A stretch of 64,000 nt of DNA from the sequence record PV261924.1; one strand, written 5' to 3'. The position numbers and the translations under genes are program-made. Numbering within the stretch: position 1 is the stretch's first letter; every line of letters starts with the position of its first letter. This document shows, one piece after another, positions 3,445 to 63,617 of the stretch. The notes beneath the pieces are model-generated. The model had not been told where the DNA came from and did no database searches. It was given only the letters and a program-made list of their open reading frames with translations.

Positions 3445-5154
3445 TTAAATTTTTCTTGAGAAACCTTTATGTTTTTCAAACTTGACTACATTTTCAAACT
3501 TATCGTCCATACCAGTTTTGTGACTGATAACGAATATGTTTGCGTCTTTGATAGTGTATCGAATAATTTTGAGGAACTCATCCGTTCCAAAACCGTCTAG
3601 TGAACTATCGAAGACCTCATCCATAATGAGGAGATTTGTATTGACTGAGTTCTTGACCCTTGCAATTTCCCTCCAAGTGAATAGTAGTGCTAGGTCAATT
3701 CTCATTTTCTCCCCTTCACTAAATGACGGATAAGAAAAGTCTTCGTGAATGGGAGATTCTACAGTTTCGTTGAATTCTTCATCAAGTTTGAAATTAATGT
3801 AAAAGTCCATCATCTGTAGATACTTATTAACTTGTTGGTTGATAAGTGGTAGATACTTTTTGATGATCTTTGCTTTTACACCACCGTCTTTGAGCAGACT
3901 ATAGATGAAATCGTGGTAAGAAATATTGTCCTTGTGCTTTACCAGTTCATCATATGTCTTATCAAGACTATCTCGTAAGGTTTCTAACTTCTCATGCTCA
4001 GAATTTCGGTTCTCGATCTGACTGGTAACAGTTTGAATTTCTGATTCCAGTCCCCTGATCTGTCGTTGAAAACCAGAGATCTGTACATTGAAAGAAGAAA
4101 TGTCATTAAGTGTTTCTGAGATTTTAGTGGATACAGTTTTAAAATGTGATTCCCTCAGTTCTTCATCTTTAATCGCCGATTGGAGTTTTTCAAACCCTTC
4201 TCTGAGCTCTTCTGCCTTAGATTGGGAATCACTAATTCTATTTACTCTAAACAACTCCTCAATGTCCTGATTACAGGTAGGACAAACCGTATTCTCAGTA
4301 AAAAATTTATGTTCCTTGACAATACTTTGTATACGTTGAGACAGTTTACCTTTGATACTACCAAACTCCCTCAATCTATCCTGGGCATTATCAACAGTTT
4401 TCAACTCCTTTTGAAGGTACTCCAATACTTCTTCTTGTTCAAAACTCTGTTTGAAGCATCTCTCAATTTCTTGATTCAGACCCTCAATCTTATCAGTCTT
4501 CTTCTTGATAGTATCCTTACTCTGACTCTCAATCTTTTCGATAAAGTCTTTTTGCATATCGACCTTATCTTTCAAGTTCTCCTTCTTCAGTTCTAGAGTC
4601 CTGACCTCATCACGAATACCACGTATCTTACCTTTGATGACATCATTCATCGAAGAGAAGATTTTGATATCCAATAGATCTTCTACCACTTCTCTACGTG
4701 CAGAGGTGGGGAGTTGCATAAACGGAACAAAGGTAGAAGAACCCAGGATCACAATCTGTGTAAATGACTTGTAGTTCATCTTCAACACATTCTGTTCCAA
4801 CCACTTCTGTTGATCTAATGCAGATGCAGATTGATCCAACTCTTCATCATTACGATAGATCTTGAAGATGTTTGGTTTGATTCCACGTTGAATCTTCCAC
4901 TGAACAGAGTTCACGTCAAACTCAATCTCCACAAGACAAGCCTTCTCGTTTGTAGAGTTAATCAACTGTGCTTTATTGATCTTACGAAAAGACTTACCAT
5001 ACAGAACAAAAGTCAGTGCATCAAGAATGGTGGACTTACCTGCACCATTCGATCCAATGATTAATGTCGTACTTGTTTCGTTAAGATTGACTTCTGTTGG
5101 GTGGTTCCCCGTTGATAAAAAGTTTTGCCACTTAATCTTTTTGAAAACTATCAT
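3445..5154 (-). CDS. g46: Recombination endonuclease subunit gp46 (SbcC/Rad50-like)
   Basis: Walker A GSNGAGKST, zinc hook CPTC, signature FSEGE, Walker B LLIMDEVFD, coiled coils. Confidence 0.97.
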   Translation of the reverse strand: MIVFKKIKWQNFLSTGNHPTEVNLNETSTTLIIGSNGAGKSTILDALTFVLYGKSFRKINKAQLINSTNEKACLVEIEFDVNSVQWKIQRGIKPNIFKIYRNDEELDQSASALDQQKWLEQNVLKMNYKSFTQIVILGSSTFVPFMQLPTSARREVVEDLLDIKIFSSMNDVIKGKIRGIRDEVRTLELKKENLKDKVDMQKDFIEKIESQSKDTIKKKTDKIEGLNQEIERCFKQSFEQEEVLEYLQKELKTVDNAQDRLREFGSIKGKLSQRIQSIVKEHKFFTENTVCPTCNQDIEELFRVNRISDSQSKAEELREGFEKLQSAIKDEELRESHFKTVSTKISETLNDISSFNVQISGFQRQIRGLESEIQTVTSQIENRNSEHEKLETLRDSLDKTYDELVKHKDNISYHDFIYSLLKDGGVKAKIIKKYLPLINQQVNKYLQMMDFYINFKLDEEFNETVESPIHEDFSYPSFSEGEKMRIDLALLFTWREIARVKNSVNTNLLIMDEVFDSSLDGFGTDEFLKIIRYTIKDANIFVISHKTGMDDKFENVVKFEKHKGFSRKI

Positions 5155-58379: not shown

Positions 58380-60422
58380 TTAGTAGGATGCTCTGCTAAC
58401 GATTGCGGTACCAAGTGGTTGTCGGGGAGTTGTGGTCAGAAGTGCCTGTTCTTGTTCAGGGGTTTCGACAGTAGTAATTGGTGTACCTCTTACTAATGCG
58501 TTTGATCCATAACTTGATGAAACAATGTAGTTTGTTCCTGATACATCATTTCCAGAGGAAATGTTGTCAGCAATAACATCGACTGTTGTATTATTTACAT
58601 CCAATTGTAGATAGAGATCTTGGAGACCAATCACATCATTAGAGTATGGAGTTGCCGATACCTCTACCAATGGTGTATTTCTATTTACGATGGTAGAAAT
58701 GATGTTAATTGGGTTGAGTTTGATTTCTCCCTTCTTGTAATCAATAGTACCTACGTTCTGTTTTACAATAATTGGTTCAGTAGGTGAATTAAGTTTGAAG
58801 AGGAATACCGTACCTTTCTCAAGGTCACCTGTGGGTTTATCACCAAGGTAAACCGTACCACTAATACCACTGACAGTGAAACCAGATGATTTGATATTGT
58901 AACCAACTAGGTTTCCATCGAAGACTGCACTATGACCATGATTCTTCACATGGAAACGATTACCGAAGCATAATTCGTACTCAGCAAACTTATTAGGAGA
59001 AGCAACCATATCTCTTCTCATATTCACATTTGTGATGTTAGAAGTTACAGACTGATGGCTACTATCAATAACCTTTTGGAACTTGGAATATTTGAAACGA
59101 GCACCAAACTGATTAAGTTCTGATGAATCAGCGTAAGCAGTCAAGTTCTGTAATACTACATTCTGAACGAATGATGCATTAGGTGCAAGGTTTGTATTGT
59201 AGTATGTCTCACAATCTGCTTCAACATACAGATACTTCAGGTCAATGATCTCTGCTCGAATACCAGCAACTGAGTAACTTTTGATTCTCTGTTGAAGGTT
59301 TTGTTTGATTCCACTTGATAAGAAGACACCATTATATGGTTTGACACTGATGAACACCTTACCAAACTGTGGTGGGCTCAGATCCTCACCACCAAATGCT
59401 GATACTGATTCAGCTTCTGGGTAGATCTGTGGAATTAATGCTTCATAATCAGCAGCAGTGACTGCTCTGTTCTGTGATGCGTAAATCTGCGGTGCATACT
59501 TCTTAATCGATTCAACAGATTCAATTGATTTACCACCTGTTGATTGTAAGACCGTTTCAATAATCGATACACCAGAACTAATTCCTGCACCGTTATTATC
59601 GTTTAGGTTACCAATAAATTGAAAGTTTGCAATGTTGTTTCCACTAGCTCCATTACTTGTGATATAACTTGCTTCAATATAATTCTTATCTTCAAGTTTG
59701 ACACCAAAGACACCATCACCAAATAGTAATTCATATCTTTCTTGTGAAATCTCTTGAAGGAAATAAGCTCTGGTTGACTTAGTTACATCAAACAGACTTG
59801 TAAACAATTCAAACTGTCTTGTTACAGTTGAACTCTGGGTGTCTCTTACAACGACATTCAAGAGATCAGTATCAATACCTGAGTTAGGAAGAATAAACTT
59901 CTGAAGTTTATTACTACCATCTACCGTAAAAGTTTGTTTAATGTATGTTCCTTCGTAGATATTAATATTTCTAAATGATGCAGTACCAGTTGAATCTACT
60001 GGAACAGTAATATCATTTGGAATTGAGAATATAAAATTTCGACTCTTATTGACACCAGTTGATCTAGATGTCATGACTGCACCAGCCTTAAGTGTGACTG
60101 ATACTGCGGTTGTATTACTTACGTCTACATCAAAAGATACTTGGGCGGTTGATGCTTTTCTTGATCTAGGTACATACCCAATATTCCTCGCGAGAGACAC
60201 CACGTTCTCCCTCAACGTGGCGCTATCGATGAATACCTCATTAGATACCATATTGGCATTATATGAGGTGATATACGTATTATATGCTAACGTATCGATG
60301 ATTGTGCTTAGATTCGATCCTTCAAAGTCGTAATCAGTGAAGTTTGAGTTCGAACGAAGATAGTCCTTGATAGACTCTTTGATCTGATCAAAATCTAAGT
60401 TGCTAAAATTAACTAGAGGCAT
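58380..60422 (-). CDS. g6: Baseplate wedge subunit gp6
   Basis: LDFDQIK, FTDYDFEGS, SATLRENVVSLARNIGYVP, QNRAVTAADY. Confidence 0.95.
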   Translation of the reverse strand: MPLVNFSNLDFDQIKESIKDYLRSNSNFTDYDFEGSNLSTIIDTLAYNTYITSYNANMVSNEVFIDSATLRENVVSLARNIGYVPRSRKASTAQVSFDVDVSNTTAVSVTLKAGAVMTSRSTGVNKSRNFIFSIPNDITVPVDSTGTASFRNINIYEGTYIKQTFTVDGSNKLQKFILPNSGIDTDLLNVVVRDTQSSTVTRQFELFTSLFDVTKSTRAYFLQEISQERYELLFGDGVFGVKLEDKNYIEASYITSNGASGNNIANFQFIGNLNDNNGAGISSGVSIIETVLQSTGGKSIESVESIKKYAPQIYASQNRAVTAADYEALIPQIYPEAESVSAFGGEDLSPPQFGKVFISVKPYNGVFLSSGIKQNLQQRIKSYSVAGIRAEIIDLKYLYVEADCETYYNTNLAPNASFVQNVVLQNLTAYADSSELNQFGARFKYSKFQKVIDSSHQSVTSNITNVNMRRDMVASPNKFAEYELCFGNRFHVKNHGHSAVFDGNLVGYNIKSSGFTVSGISGTVYLGDKPTGDLEKGTVFLFKLNSPTEPIIVKQNVGTIDYKKGEIKLNPINIISTIVNRNTPLVEVSATPYSNDVIGLQDLYLQLDVNNTTVDVIADNISSGNDVSGTNYIVSSSYGSNALVRGTPITTVETPEQEQALLTTTPRQPLGTAIVSRASY

Positions 60423-60824
60423 TTACCTAGTGGGTTGTAATGCAAATGATAATTGTTGTGGTGCTACGTCAATACCAATGATGTCATACCGAATGACTAC
60501 ATCGAAGGCATTATTGTCAAAGTTAGGGTTAACTTCAACTTCTCTCAATCGAACTCTTGGTTCAAAGTTATTAATCGTGTTCTCAATCTCAGATCGAATA
60601 GAACTTGCTGTCAAGAAGTCTAAGTTTTCAAATAATAAGTTGGTGACATTTGATCCAATTGTTGGTTCAAATGGTTTCTCACCAGGAATGGTAAAGACTA
60701 AATTACGAATTGAACGAGCAATAGCATTCTCGTTTCTCAGGATAATCACATCAGAATTGATCGGATTAACCTGAAAAGTAGCACTTACGTCTTTAAAAGC
60801 TTTACTTATCCTTTGGACAGGCAC
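60423..60824 (-). CDS. g25: Baseplate wedge subunit gp25
   Basis: NENAIARSIRNLVFT.PGEKPFEP.IGS, NFEPRV. Confidence 0.95.
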   Translation of the reverse strand: MPVQRISKAFKDVSATFQVNPINSDVIILRNENAIARSIRNLVFTIPGEKPFEPTIGSNVTNLLFENLDFLTASSIRSEIENTINNFEPRVRLREVEVNPNFDNNAFDVVIRYDIIGIDVAPQQLSFALQPTR

Positions 60825-60850: not shown

Positions 60851-60858
60851 TATTTATA
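60851..60858 (-). promoter_or_regulatory. T4-type late promoter opening the baseplate operon
   Basis: Perfect TATAAATA. Confidence 0.85.
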
Positions 60859-60874
60859 GGGGTATCCCGACAAA

Positions 60875-61030
60875 TCACTCAGTTAAAATTTGACTATTAT
60901 CTTCATTCTCCCAGAAGTCTTTCCAGTCCACCTCAGATGCTTCATAGAAACCATCTTGACGGACTTTCTTCTGATTCTTTGGTGTCTTCTGATCGTGATT
61001 GATCTCTCTCAAAAAGTTCTTGTTGTCCAT
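60875..61030 (-). CDS. Small hypothetical protein (51 aa, below ORF-track cutoff)
   Basis: Manual translation MDNKNFLREINHDQKTPKNQKKVRQDGFYEASEVDWKDFWENEDNSQILTE. Confidence 0.65.
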   Translation of the reverse strand: MDNKNFLREINHDQKTPKNQKKVRQDGFYEASEVDWKDFWENEDNSQILTE

Positions 61031-61043
61031 ATAAGTCTTTTAC

Positions 61044-61670
61044 TTATATATCCTTCACCTCGTACATATAATGATCAGAGGTTTCAATCTTCCTTTTGTT
61101 CTCTACACTATAGACTGTAGTATCAATCTCAAATCCAGGATTCTTTTCAATACGATTAAATGTCCAGGCATTATCATACCAAATGATTCGATTGTTAGGA
61201 TAGGCGTAATAGTTACCAGTCTCTACTTTAAACAGGTGTGCACACTTATGTTCAGGTGTTTCTGAATAGTTGAGATCAGGTACACCTTTATTCTCCCAGG
61301 ACCAATCTAAGGTGAACATATAATCACCCAATACCTTCTTACCATCAGGACGAATCAATTGTGCTTCAAGACCAGCAAGTCGATGTCGTCTTTGTACATC
61401 AATATAAGGACTGAAGCAATCCCAATACATGATCTGCTCTAAGGGTTCTATCTCGGCCTCTGGGTCCCAACAAAATGCATGTAGGGGTCTCCGTGTCCAA
61501 TTGACACCATTCTCCAGAAACGCTTCAAATAGAGGCACACGTTTCTCAATACTTGCCACACTATGAACATCGGCCTTAGTGACCTCTCCATGTCCTTTCT
61601 TGTGGTTATACAGAAACTCATTACGAATGTAACAAGACCAATCAGGTAAACTGTGATTTAAGTAAGCCAA
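61044..61670 (-). CDS. Hypothetical protein (208 aa)
   Basis: TTG start after SD AGGAGAAAGGA; GNYYAYPNNRIIW motif. Confidence 0.8.
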   Translation of the reverse strand: MAYLNHSLPDWSCYIRNEFLYNHKKGHGEVTKADVHSVASIEKRVPLFEAFLENGVNWTRRPLHAFCWDPEAEIEPLEQIMYWDCFSPYIDVQRRHRLAGLEAQLIRPDGKKVLGDYMFTLDWSWENKGVPDLNYSETPEHKCAHLFKVETGNYYAYPNNRIIWYDNAWTFNRIEKNPGFEIDTTVYSVENKRKIETSDHYMYEVKDI

Positions 61671-62032
61671 TTCCTTTCTCCTGGAAAATAATAATCAGTG
61701 AGTTCTTCGTCCTTAAGTATATCACGAACTGCATACAGTTTACCTGTACTTCGTTCATATGCTACATTCGGTTCATGTGAATGATTGATGTAATACTGTT
61801 GACCTAACCGTTGTAGATCATCATCAATCCAATAACCATTACCATCATAATAAGTCATCTTCTCTAGATACTCTCTTATTTCAGATGATATCTGCCATTC
61901 ACATATTTGAACACACTTCTTAGGTTCAAAGATAATAGTATCTTTTGGAATATCCACTAAAGAAAAAACACCCACCCCGTCACAGACTTTACTGGGAGCG
62001 AGATAGGTGTAAACAGTTAGATTATAACTCAA
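61658..62032 (-). CDS. SET-domain protein, putative lysine methyltransferase
   Basis: DGVGVF (motif I), YINHSHEPN (motif III), AVRDI.KDEELTDYY (motif IV); TTG start overlaps the upstream TGA. Confidence 0.85.
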   Translation of the reverse strand: MSYNLTVYTYLAPSKVCDGVGVFSLVDIPKDTIIFEPKKCVQICEWQISSEIREYLEKMTYYDGNGYWIDDDLQRLGQQYYINHSHEPNVAYERSTGKLYAVRDILKDEELTDYYFPGERNWLT

Positions 62033-62175
62033 CGTCCTTGACCACGATAACGCTTCTTCTTACCGTTTCGAGAGGAAGCTGACAACTTAGTGTGCTTACC
62101 ACTACCTTGACGTGATTTCTTTGGAGTTGACTCGATCATTGTTTGACCAGTCAGTGAACGTTTAAACTTTGCCAT
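62029..62175 (-). CDS. Small Lys/Arg-rich protein (48 aa, below ORF-track cutoff)
   Basis: MAKFKRSLTGQTMIESTPKKSRQGSGKHTKLSASSRNGKKKRYRGQGR; SD GGAGG. Confidence 0.85.
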   Translation of the reverse strand: MAKFKRSLTGQTMIESTPKKSRQGSGKHTKLSASSRNGKKKRYRGQGR

Positions 62176-62183
62176 AATACCTC

Positions 62184-62750
62184 CTAATATGGTTCAAAAT
62201 AATTTAAAACTTCATCAATGTGAAACACATAGCACGGAGCTGTTGTGTATCCATAGTATAACATCTTTTGTATCCTATGGGAACCATCCATTGATCTATA
62301 TCTCTTTCCAGTAATCGTAGTAGTACCATCTAATAAGATACCTGGATATGTAATATCTGCTTCAATGACTCTACTACCACCACAACATGGACAATATAAT
62401 GTATCTGAGGTAGCTCCATATTTCTCTTCCTGATACCATTGAATATCAGAAATCGGAACATCCAGTAGTCTATCTGAATTACGCATCCAATTCAATCTTC
62501 TTAATCGAATCCAATACCCTTCACCTACCTCTGGAATATACCAATTGGTTTCGGACTTGAATCCAGACTTATCATAATGTTGAAAACTATCACCCTCAAA
62601 GTAATGAGAAAATAATAACTCATCATACCATCCATCATAACCATATAACTTTAATTCATTGTCTCGATAATCATCAATACAATAAATGTTACCAGGTATC
62701 AGTTCTGGATACTGTGAGAAACCATCATACAATACAAGTAATCCTTTCAT
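62184..62750 (-). CDS. Hypothetical protein with C-terminal ParB/Sulfiredoxin-like motif
   Basis: ADITYPGILL...YRSMDGSHRIQKM; start moved to 62750 because 62753-62774 is a terminator. Confidence 0.6.
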   Translation of the reverse strand: MKGLLVLYDGFSQYPELIPGNIYCIDDYRDNELKLYGYDGWYDELLFSHYFEGDSFQHYDKSGFKSETNWYIPEVGEGYWIRLRRLNWMRNSDRLLDVPISDIQWYQEEKYGATSDTLYCPCCGGSRVIEADITYPGILLDGTTTITGKRYRSMDGSHRIQKMLYYGYTTAPCYVFHIDEVLNYFEPY

Positions 62751-62752
62751 AT

Positions 62753-62774
62753 AAAAAAGGGGGTCGAAACCCCC
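62753..62774 (-). terminator. Intrinsic terminator after the glycosyltransferase-like gene
   Basis: GGGGGT-TTCG-ACCCCC-T6 (UUCG loop). Confidence 0.9.
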
Positions 62775-62779
62775 ATACA

Positions 62780-63559
62780 TCAGATCACCCGAGTCTTCTC
62801 ATGACCCACTCGAATACGTGGATCACACCAGATATCATATCCAGCTTCAATTGCATCAAGACAGAATGAAACGTCTTCACCACACATATCTTGAACTGCA
62901 CCACTTTCAAACACTTGCATCTTTGGTGCAAACCAAGGATACTTCATCTTCTCATTCTCAAAGACACCATTCTGAATCAGAACCCAACCGAATCCAGTAT
63001 AGTCAACAGTAAATGGCTTCTTACGCTTACTGATACCATCAACCATCTCATGATTCATCACACCACCATTATTCCTGAAGTCATCTTCCTCCAACCAATG
63101 CGCAACAGAGGTTGTCCGCCCGTCCTCAGTCGAATACCAACCGGCAACGATTTCCTTCTCCTCACCTTCAGAGTTTAAAGCTAGGTCGCACAGCTGCCAG
63201 AACTTCTCAGTGTTAAAAATAATATCAGAATCAATCCACAACTGATAATCATAGTTCAACTTACCATCCCAAGGAATCTGGTCAGGCCCTCTCAACACAT
63301 TGGCGCCGAGACACTTACAACGTGCGAAGTTCACCATAGACGAGTAATCCTGACTGATCTGAATACTCATCTGGTTCTGTACAAGGTCAAAACATAACTG
63401 TACAAAATTCTTCATGAATGCATATGAACATCCACGTCCTGGAAGACAAAAAACAATTGCCTTCCCTCTCATCCGTTCTTTAATCGCTTCATAGTCCCAC
63501 TCAGGACCTTTATCTTTCTTCTTTGGTTCTGAAGCTTTTACTGTAAAACCTTTAGCCAT
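62780..63559 (-). CDS. GT-A fold glycosyltransferase-like protein
   Basis: IVFCLPG, NFARC, LWIDSDIIF (DxD), YTGFGWVLI..GVF, GEDVSFC, VGHEK; start moved to MAKGF because the -10 box lies just upstream. Confidence 0.75.
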   Translation of the reverse strand: MAKGFTVKASEPKKKDKGPEWDYEAIKERMRGKAIVFCLPGRGCSYAFMKNFVQLCFDLVQNQMSIQISQDYSSMVNFARCKCLGANVLRGPDQIPWDGKLNYDYQLWIDSDIIFNTEKFWQLCDLALNSEGEEKEIVAGWYSTEDGRTTSVAHWLEEDDFRNNGGVMNHEMVDGISKRKKPFTVDYTGFGWVLIQNGVFENEKMKYPWFAPKMQVFESGAVQDMCGEDVSFCLDAIEAGYDIWCDPRIRVGHEKTRVI

Positions 63560-63588: not shown

Positions 63589-63617
63589 ATTATACCAAGT
63601 ATGTAGTCCTCTGTCAA
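63589..63617 (-). promoter_or_regulatory. Consensus sigma70 (early) promoter
   Basis: TTGACA-N17-TATAAT, perfect match. Confidence 0.9.

Follow-up and report, generated by a model that had tools for sequence, protein, structure and literature searches.

A SET-domain methyltransferase gene found in the genome of a cyanophage raises the question of which protein the enzyme modifies, the cyanobacterial hosts (Synechococcus) being, to our knowledge, devoid of histones. The original prediction held that the 124-residue SET protein and a 48-residue basic protein encoded immediately upstream, hereafter basic48, form an enzyme-substrate pair, or else that the SET protein acts on host proteins. The locus resides in a window of 64,000 nucleotides (the whole stretch of DNA analysed) that derives from a T4-like cyanomyovirus belonging to the S-B05/RN05-S group; its sequence in this region matches Synechococcus phage RN05-S (PV261924.1) at 100% identity and is 99.5-99.7% identical to phages S-B05, S-B43, and RB11-B, all of them T4-like cyanomyoviruses with Synechococcus sp. 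MW02 as the isolation host. The genes are all transcribed from the minus strand, in the order glycosyltransferase-like, 198-residue protein, basic48, SET, PurM-like, 51-residue protein, gp25, and gp6 (Table 1), and neither Rfam nor tRNA scanning gave a match anywhere in the window.

Table 1. Features of the SET locus, listed in the direction of transcription
Feature	Position	Strand	Evidence or remark
sigma-70-type promoter	63589..63617	-	just upstream of the glycosyltransferase-like gene; 12/12 consensus matches plus extended TG
glycosyltransferase-like gene, 267 aa	62780..63583	-	phrog_1574, E 7e-119; weak glycosyltransferase PHROG match
198-aa hypothetical gene	62184..62780	-	phrog_35149, E 1.5e-14; no Pfam match
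basic48, 48-aa basic protein gene	62029..62175	-	phrog_516, full length
TTGA, SET start codon overlapping basic48 stop	62029..62032	-	sequence
SET-domain gene, 124 aa, TTG start	61658..62032	-	Pfam PF00856
13-nt overlap, SET end / PurM-like TTG start	61658..61670	-	sequence
PurM-like gene, 208 aa	61044..61670	-	phrog_3704, E 2e-52
51-aa acidic hypothetical gene	60875..61030	-	last gene ahead of the late promoter
T4-type late promoter motif TATAAATA	60851..60858	-	26 nt upstream of gp25
gp25 baseplate wedge gene	60423..60824	-	Pfam PF04965, E 3.5e-15; downstream limit of the variable slot
gp6 baseplate gene	58380..60422	-	

The 124-residue open reading frame encodes a SET domain, matching Pfam PF00856 with an E-value of 3.2e-13 and 50.5 bits (cutoff 22.4) over profile positions 1-104 of 105; this is the single Pfam match of the protein, without a pre-SET or post-SET domain. 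The motifs by which the gene was first recognized are all found, including (i) GVGVF at residues 19-23, (ii) YINHSHEPN at residues 81-89, and (iii) RDILKDEELTDYY at residues 103-115. Alignment of 39 relatives discloses the invariant residues G19, G21, Y80, Y81, N83, N89, E110, L111, and Y115, with H84 kept in at least 90% of them, and the GxG SAM-binding motif, the NH(S/C)xxPN motif, and the ELxxxY motif carrying the catalytic tyrosine are all present. A profile search of the PDB with the SET family matched the SET domains of KMT2C/KMT2D (E 9e-6), Y115 aligning with the last tyrosine of the KMT2D catalytic motif, the catalytic tyrosine column. The AF2 model (pLDDT 79.1, pTM 0.65) retrieved 104 PDB matches at E ≤ 0.001 with Foldseek, the best 50 of the 104 being SET or PR domains; the best E-value for SET domains is ~9e-6, with TM-scores of only 0.43-0.50 and high rmsd. 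At the motif level, both the SAM-binding site and the catalytic tyrosine, on which the original prediction depends, are present. As read from its sequence, the protein is a core-only SET domain with every motif for SAM binding and lysine methyl transfer.

The possibility that the gene is an inactive or decaying passenger is consistent with its dispensability in most relatives and with its TTG start lacking a Shine-Dalgarno sequence; nevertheless, full-length SET open reading frames extend from 100% down to ~30% identity with the catalytic motifs invariant, and the 168 clusters at 90% identity in the public protein collection include no truncated series that we could see, so that decay is highly improbable. 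Judged on this sequence evidence, the gene is real and the predicted methyltransferase is probably active. The family, for which over 1,200 representatives were counted at E ≤ 0.001, is widespread in marine phage sequence, yet it is unstudied: a literature search brought up no published characterization of a SET-domain enzyme from a bacteriophage.

Comparison with known SET enzymes highlights a shared catalytic core and important differences in architecture and context. Chlorovirus vSET (PDB code 3kma) is a minimal viral SET that methylates histone H3K27, in a host that has histones. Both vSET and the cyanophage protein are virus-encoded SET cores of ~120 residues without pre-SET or post-SET domains, and vSET ranks 11th among the Foldseek matches of the SET model (E 2.9e-5, TM-score 0.50/0.59); however, the two share 19% identity in the structural alignment, vSET is absent from the PDB sequence-profile matches at E ≤ 0.01, and the cyanophage gene is tied to a PurM-like gene in phages of Synechococcus. 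Membership in a vSET-like group of histone methyltransferases was rejected, the likeness being a fold match only, at 19% identity and with hosts in which we know of no histones. The KMT2C/KMT2D (MLL3/4) domains give the best profile and fold matches (E 9e-6 and 1e-5, respectively), with the GxG, NHS..PN, and EL..Y motifs aligned, whereas the cyanophage protein lacks the post-SET zinc region, the partner-binding region, and the WRAD-type partners, and the TM-scores are 0.45-0.5. Plant Rubisco LSMT comprises a SET core with an inserted region (split SET) and a C-terminal substrate-binding lobe. The suggestion that the phage enzyme might resemble the SET-type enzymes acting on Rubisco fails on architecture: the likeness lies in the SET catalytic core and a presumed non-histone substrate, but the 124-residue protein has a single Pfam match, the SET domain, with no insert and no C-terminal substrate-binding lobe, and LSMT-type membership was rejected.

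The composition of basic48 is as first described (9 K, 6 R, 1 E, 0 D, 7 S, 6 G, and 4 T), with a pI of 12.0, and the protein matches phrog_516 over its full length (E 3e-24). When 95 unique DNA versions of the gene are compared, codon positions 1, 2, and 3 show entropies of 0.68, 0.53, and 1.44 bits, respectively; variation thus falls mostly at third codon positions, which argues that basic48 is a real gene under purifying selection. The label 'histone-tail-like' holds for the composition but not for similarity to histones, since basic48 has no match in Pfam (E < 0.1), NCBIfam, or the PDB (33-sequence profile, E ≤ 10); homology to histones or nucleoid proteins was rejected because all of these searches were empty. 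A tblastn search located basic48 in 447 phage records, all of them Synechococcus or Prochlorococcus phages or marine isolates, and SET in 7 phage records representing three lineages. A further 25 matches carry 'cellular' genome labels, comprising MAG contigs with scattered taxonomic labels and one 188-kb isolate-assembly contig, and wherever flanks are present these contigs display the order glycosyltransferase-like, basic48, (PurM-like), gp25; they were read as mis-binned phage DNA, a cellular origin was rejected, and no cellular homologue of basic48 was found. Hence basic48 is a conserved, phage-only core gene, and SET is rare by comparison. The glycosyltransferase-like gene is syntenic upstream of basic48 in most relatives' loci, and a copy of the 198-residue gene between the two was seen only in the S-B05/RN05-S group, the search having covered loci L001-L033 with a sole match in L001, the record of this phage itself. 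A literature search on basic48 and on genes of S-B05 and Sf-CH1b retrieved nothing relevant.

The overlap that first linked the two genes is confirmed in the sequence, the TTG start of SET and the TGA stop of basic48 sharing the tetranucleotide TTGA. No in-frame ATG precedes the GxG motif in the SET frame, and in relatives the corresponding start codon is ATG, generating the junctions ATGA, TGAATG, and TAATG; both points make the TTG start credible. The ATG of basic48 is preceded, at a distance of 7 nt, by the Shine-Dalgarno sequence AGGAGG; the sole purine-rich stretch before the SET TTG is 2 nt away from it and lies within conserved C-terminal codons of basic48. SET thus has no usable Shine-Dalgarno sequence and is probably translated by reinitiation. 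A second overlap, unmentioned in the original prediction, connects the SET stop to the next gene (Table 1).

An enzyme-substrate pair, in which SET, coupled and made at a low level, would methylate lysines of basic48 and so tune its nucleic-acid binding, draws on several of these features. The junction between the two genes is tight, at -4 to +2 nt in 32 of the 36 close SET loci, and basic48 likewise precedes SET in a more distant cyanomyovirus clade (L160 and L161) and, with a gap, in L038. Moreover, basic48 is strongly basic and carries the invariant lysines K19, K30, and K41. Prokaryotic SET proteins are known to methylate small basic DNA-binding proteins, as in cpnSET-Hc1 and Go1-SET-MC1-alpha (PMC3980110), in which a small SET acts on a lysine-rich DNA-binding protein in an organism that has no histones, a precedent for this idea; basic48, however, shows no detected likeness to Hc1 or MC1, and genomics does not tie SET to it. 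The three lysines are invariant in both SET-containing and SET-less phages, and no lysine position is specific to the former (20 SET-containing versus 78 SET-less unique basic48 sequences). More generally, the conservation of basic48 is just as strong in the phages that lack SET, and these form the large majority, as the record counts above illustrate. Recurrence of SET beside the basic gene across phages, on which the original prediction turns, is borne out within the close loci but does not extend to all contexts: among the 36 close SET loci, of which L020 could not be judged for basic48, SET and the PurM-like gene are kept with basic48 absent from the locus in L013 and L019, and another gene separates basic48 from SET in L021.

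The genomic place itself offers a different account of the overlap. The slot between basic48 and the late promoter of gp25 is a variable-gene hot-spot. Among 98 unique loci without SET, basic48 is followed by the PurM-like gene in 40, by gp25 in 24, and by another gene in 31, a plant-type ferredoxin being among these others; in phage P-SSM4, an 'HN' gene and then denV follow basic48. Of the 74 SET-less cases in which the neighbour is not gp25, 31 have a downstream start codon that overlaps or directly adjoins the stop of basic48 (ATGA, GTGA, TTGA, or TAATG), and the TTGA overlap is therefore a property of the place rather than the mark of a dedicated pair; in a phage hot-spot, a start-stop overlap is weak evidence of a functional pair. 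The gp46-gp25 region of T4-like cyanophages is a published variable-gene hot-spot (PMC3037559) and corresponds to the same genomic place, which here holds petF, denV, HN-like, PurM-like, and other accessory genes across phages; the literature search found no description of SET as cargo of this hot-spot. Open reading frames of 95 residues after basic48, SET-like at their beginning, were considered as SET remnants and rejected, being petF ferredoxins. Taken with the excess of basic48 over SET in the phage records and the SET loci that have no basic48, these overlaps leave the dedicated pairing improbable, and the original prediction is supported in part.

Within the slot, SET is optional: relatives either carry it, with basic48 upstream and the PurM-like gene downstream, or lack it cleanly between these two genes. 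When the PurM-like protein of the window served as the search seed, 78 loci could be assessed (PurM-like 87-98% identical); of these, 27 have SET immediately upstream of the PurM-like gene and 51 do not, and in 43 of these 51 SET-less loci the PurM-like start lies within 30 nt of the basic48 stop. The PurM-like start codon is TTG in 33 of 35 SET-containing loci and ATG in 35 of 35 SET-less loci.

The neighbour that accompanies SET most faithfully is the PurM-like gene. It follows SET in 36 of 36 close loci (SET identity 48-100%), with an identical 13-nt overlap in 35 of them, although many loci are near-duplicates and the counts do not represent independent events. Distant SET clades, 30-41% identical and with the catalytic motifs all kept, preserve the association, the PurM-like gene adjoining SET or lying one gene away in 14 of 14 assessable loci, in either order. 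The arrangements comprise (i) the PurM-like gene, 57-68% identical, immediately upstream of SET (L039, L040, L041, L125, L126, L127, L156, and L157); (ii) the PurM-like gene immediately downstream (L128, L158, and L159), or downstream after one gene (L129); and (iii) the order basic48, SET, PurM-like, gp25 (L160 and L161). The flanking genes of L039/L156, L128, and L158 differ from one another and from those of the cyanomyovirus slot, including glycosyltransferases and tail-fibre-like genes; HSP20, peptidase, and DNA polymerase B; and AdoMet decarboxylase across these sets, and no basic48 was found within 4-5 kb of SET in such contexts, which also counts against basic48 as the substrate. Two genes that stay adjacent although their order is inverted and their surroundings differ are usually functionally linked, and the comparative evidence from gene order points to the PurM-like gene as the partner of SET.

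The link is one-sided, about two thirds of the close PurM-like genes being without SET. An apparent rule that the close PurM-like subtype always occurs with SET (39/39) was discarded as an ascertainment artefact, the loci seeded with the PurM-like protein having given 27 with and 51 without. Within cyanomyoviruses, the adjacency could reflect one old insertion spread by recombination through two conserved flanks.

The product of the PurM-like gene is labelled PurM or ferredoxin in the records. No AIRS/PurM domain was found at E ≤ 10 in Pfam searches with 31 members and a divergent subtype, NCBIfam gave no match, and PDB sequences yielded nothing better than E 0.39; identity as PurM/AIR synthetase was rejected, the AIRS N-terminal and C-terminal domains both being missing. 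The PHROG label 'ferredoxin' probably derives from petF genes in the same slot. Across the same locus pairs, its conservation greatly exceeds that of SET (~67% versus ~32% identity), with D122, E137, E140, H141, K142, and R161 invariant and with unusually conserved aromatic residues, W83 and Y117 across both subtypes and further tryptophans and tyrosines within the close subtype. The AF2 model is all-beta and weak (pLDDT 66.8); the top PDB fold matches of this low-confidence model are nearly all tandem Tudor, Spindlin, and Agenet domains, at E 0.03-0.4 and TM-scores of ~0.2. Profile comparison detected no internal repeat in the protein, and all matches from a viral structure library were phage proteins that have not been characterised. 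A tandem Tudor methyl-lysine reader, as hinted by the model, is to be taken as a lead only. Six lysines of the PurM-like protein are conserved in both SET-containing and SET-less groups, none being specific to the former, and R94 and H96 co-vary with the presence of SET, a pattern that probably reflects shared ancestry.

The promoters that bound the unit suggest when SET is expressed. The sigma-70-type promoter ahead of the glycosyltransferase-like gene comprises TTGACA, a 17-nt spacer, and TG-TATAAT, read from 63617 to 63589, and the same exact pattern precedes the homologous gene in many relatives; the late motif TATAAATA occurs just twice in the window. Early promoters of cyanomyoviruses resemble sigma-70 sites, and the late promoter is NATAAATA (PMC2984593). 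The upstream site is likely the early promoter of the unit with basic48, SET, and PurM-like, and the putative late motif marks the boundary between this early-type unit and the baseplate genes. From the sigma-70 promoter and the late promoter before gp25, we infer that a single early transcript, apart from the late baseplate operon, covers basic48, SET, and PurM-like, and the promoter pattern suggests early expression of the SET unit. A terminator-like hairpin at 62759-62774 (-) might interrupt or attenuate this transcription unit.

Early expression is also what would be expected if SET acted on its own in host takeover, methylating one or more host proteins soon after infection begins, its neighbours being bystanders and the PurM-like DNA serving as a recombination anchor. 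Several observations are in keeping with such an enzyme, including the early-type promoter and the position in the early small-gene region (PMC3037559), the patchy presence and absence of SET in near-identical backgrounds, typical of accessory host-interaction genes, and a second, unrelated short SET of 98 residues (L080) that occupies the same slot without a PurM-like gene. In addition, a PurM-like gene 87-98% identical across loci is a good recombination substrate. However, hitch-hiking in one syntenic slot is disfavoured because the adjacency persists in inverted order and between different flanks (L039, L125, L128, L156, and L158). We consider the bystander account unlikely, though still a serious competitor.

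The reading that we prefer, and to which we give about an even chance of being correct, is that SET is an optional gene of the hot-spot, linked to the PurM-like gene, the substrate being the PurM-like protein or a host protein targeted by both, with the TTGA overlap explained as gene packing. In this scenario, one early polycistronic mRNA, transcribed by the host RNA polymerase, would carry basic48, SET, and PurM-like. The strong Shine-Dalgarno sequence of basic48 would support its abundant synthesis, and SET, with a TTG start and no usable Shine-Dalgarno sequence, followed by the PurM-like gene, with its TTG inside the SET stop region, would be made at lower levels by termination-reinitiation. 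SET would then methylate one or more lysines of the PurM-like protein itself or of a host protein on which both act, basic48 being a possible but less likely substrate. Identifying the target of SET would reveal whether lysine methylation of proteins is a means by which phages take over cyanobacteria.

A more elaborate version of the PurM-like link would assemble the three proteins into a lysine-methylation module of marine myoviruses, in which SET is the writer, the PurM-like protein is a substrate, adaptor, or Tudor-like reader, and basic48 is a histone-like nucleic-acid coat that is modified. We regard this version as very improbable; if true, it would represent a chromatin-style writer/reader system in bacteriophage infection.

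The locus also bears on the annotation of cyanophage genomes. The gene labelled 'PurM' is very abundant and lacks a PurM domain, and ecological surveys in which cyanophage purM is scored as a gene of purine synthesis (e.g., PMC9983427) should check the family if they rely on that label. The GenBank records annotate basic48 as a hypothetical protein, and the related record SynMITS9220M01 omits basic48 and annotates only a fragment of SET.

The PurM-like gene, the constant neighbour of the SET-domain methyltransferase gene (SET), is very abundant in marine phages, with a conservation of 65-98%, and carries neither a PurM (AIRS) domain nor any other known domain; which family was actually counted in surveys of cyanophage purM needs checking. 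Comparison of the PurM-like proteins from loci with and without SET discloses a single strong co-variation with SET presence, located at residues 94 and 96 (window region 61383-61391). Among 35 unique SET-containing loci, these positions are occupied by R94 (35/35) and H96 (32/35), whereas the 35 loci lacking SET mostly display K94 (28/35) and A, S or N at position 96, a pattern that probably reflects shared ancestry. In addition, methyl-lysine readers of the tandem Tudor, Spindlin or Agenet type account for nearly all of the top PDB fold matches of a low-confidence model of the PurM-like protein, with E values of 0.03-0.4 and TM scores of about 0.2; given the adjacent SET gene these matches are suggestive, but they fall short of significance.

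Features discussed, with coordinates in the window unless a locus is named
Feature	Coordinates	Strand	Remarks
PurM-like gene	61044-61670	(-)	labelled 'PurM protein'; in related records 'ferredoxin' or 'phosphoribosylaminoimidazole synthetase'
198-aa gene	62184-62780	(-)	phrog_35149; CPCCGG motif; inserted between glycosyltransferase-like gene and basic48
Terminator-like hairpin	62759-62774	(-)	GC-rich stem, then T-run
Sigma-70 promoter	63589-63617	(-)	perfect consensus with extended TG, 5' of glycosyltransferase-like gene
Shorter SET gene, 98 aa	L080:3469-3765		differs from the window SET; motifs more canonical
basic48 homologue and SET ORF	L003:3370-3504 and 3501-3872		Synechococcus phage SynMITS9220M01

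The slot between basic48, which encodes a conserved 48-aa basic protein, and gp25 accommodates a second type of SET gene in another cyanophage contig (L080), where the 98-aa SET follows an 87-aa membrane-like ORF and the PurM-like gene is absent from the slot; this shorter SET looks like an independent acquisition. The TTGA overlap between basic48 and SET is also found in SynMITS9220M01, whose GenBank record leaves the basic48 homologue unannotated and presents the 123-aa SET ORF only as a 64-aa fragment.

Upstream of basic48, the promoter pattern preceding the glycosyltransferase-like gene recurs as an exact copy at the equivalent site in many related phage contigs. The hairpin, at which transcription of the unit may be attenuated, lies directly past the glycosyltransferase-like stop codon, within the opening codons of the 198-aa ORF; this ORF may in fact begin at its second Met. 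The 198-aa gene is seen at this junction solely in loci of the window phage's own group, with no match in the related loci searched with it (L002-L033), in which the glycosyltransferase-like gene and basic48 stand near each other or are separated by other sequence. Across the whole 64 kb window (1-64000), neither tRNA genes nor Rfam families at the gathering threshold were detected.

Finally, basic48 is present in contigs (L131-L155) from MAGs with assignments that include Archaea, Flavobacteria, Pelagibacter and Chlamydiae, as well as in a 188-kb contig of the Nonlabens xiamenensis 1Q3 isolate assembly. Most of these contigs preserve the cyanomyovirus gene order around basic48, and the set as a whole resembles phage DNA that ended up in cellular genomes through binning or assembly.
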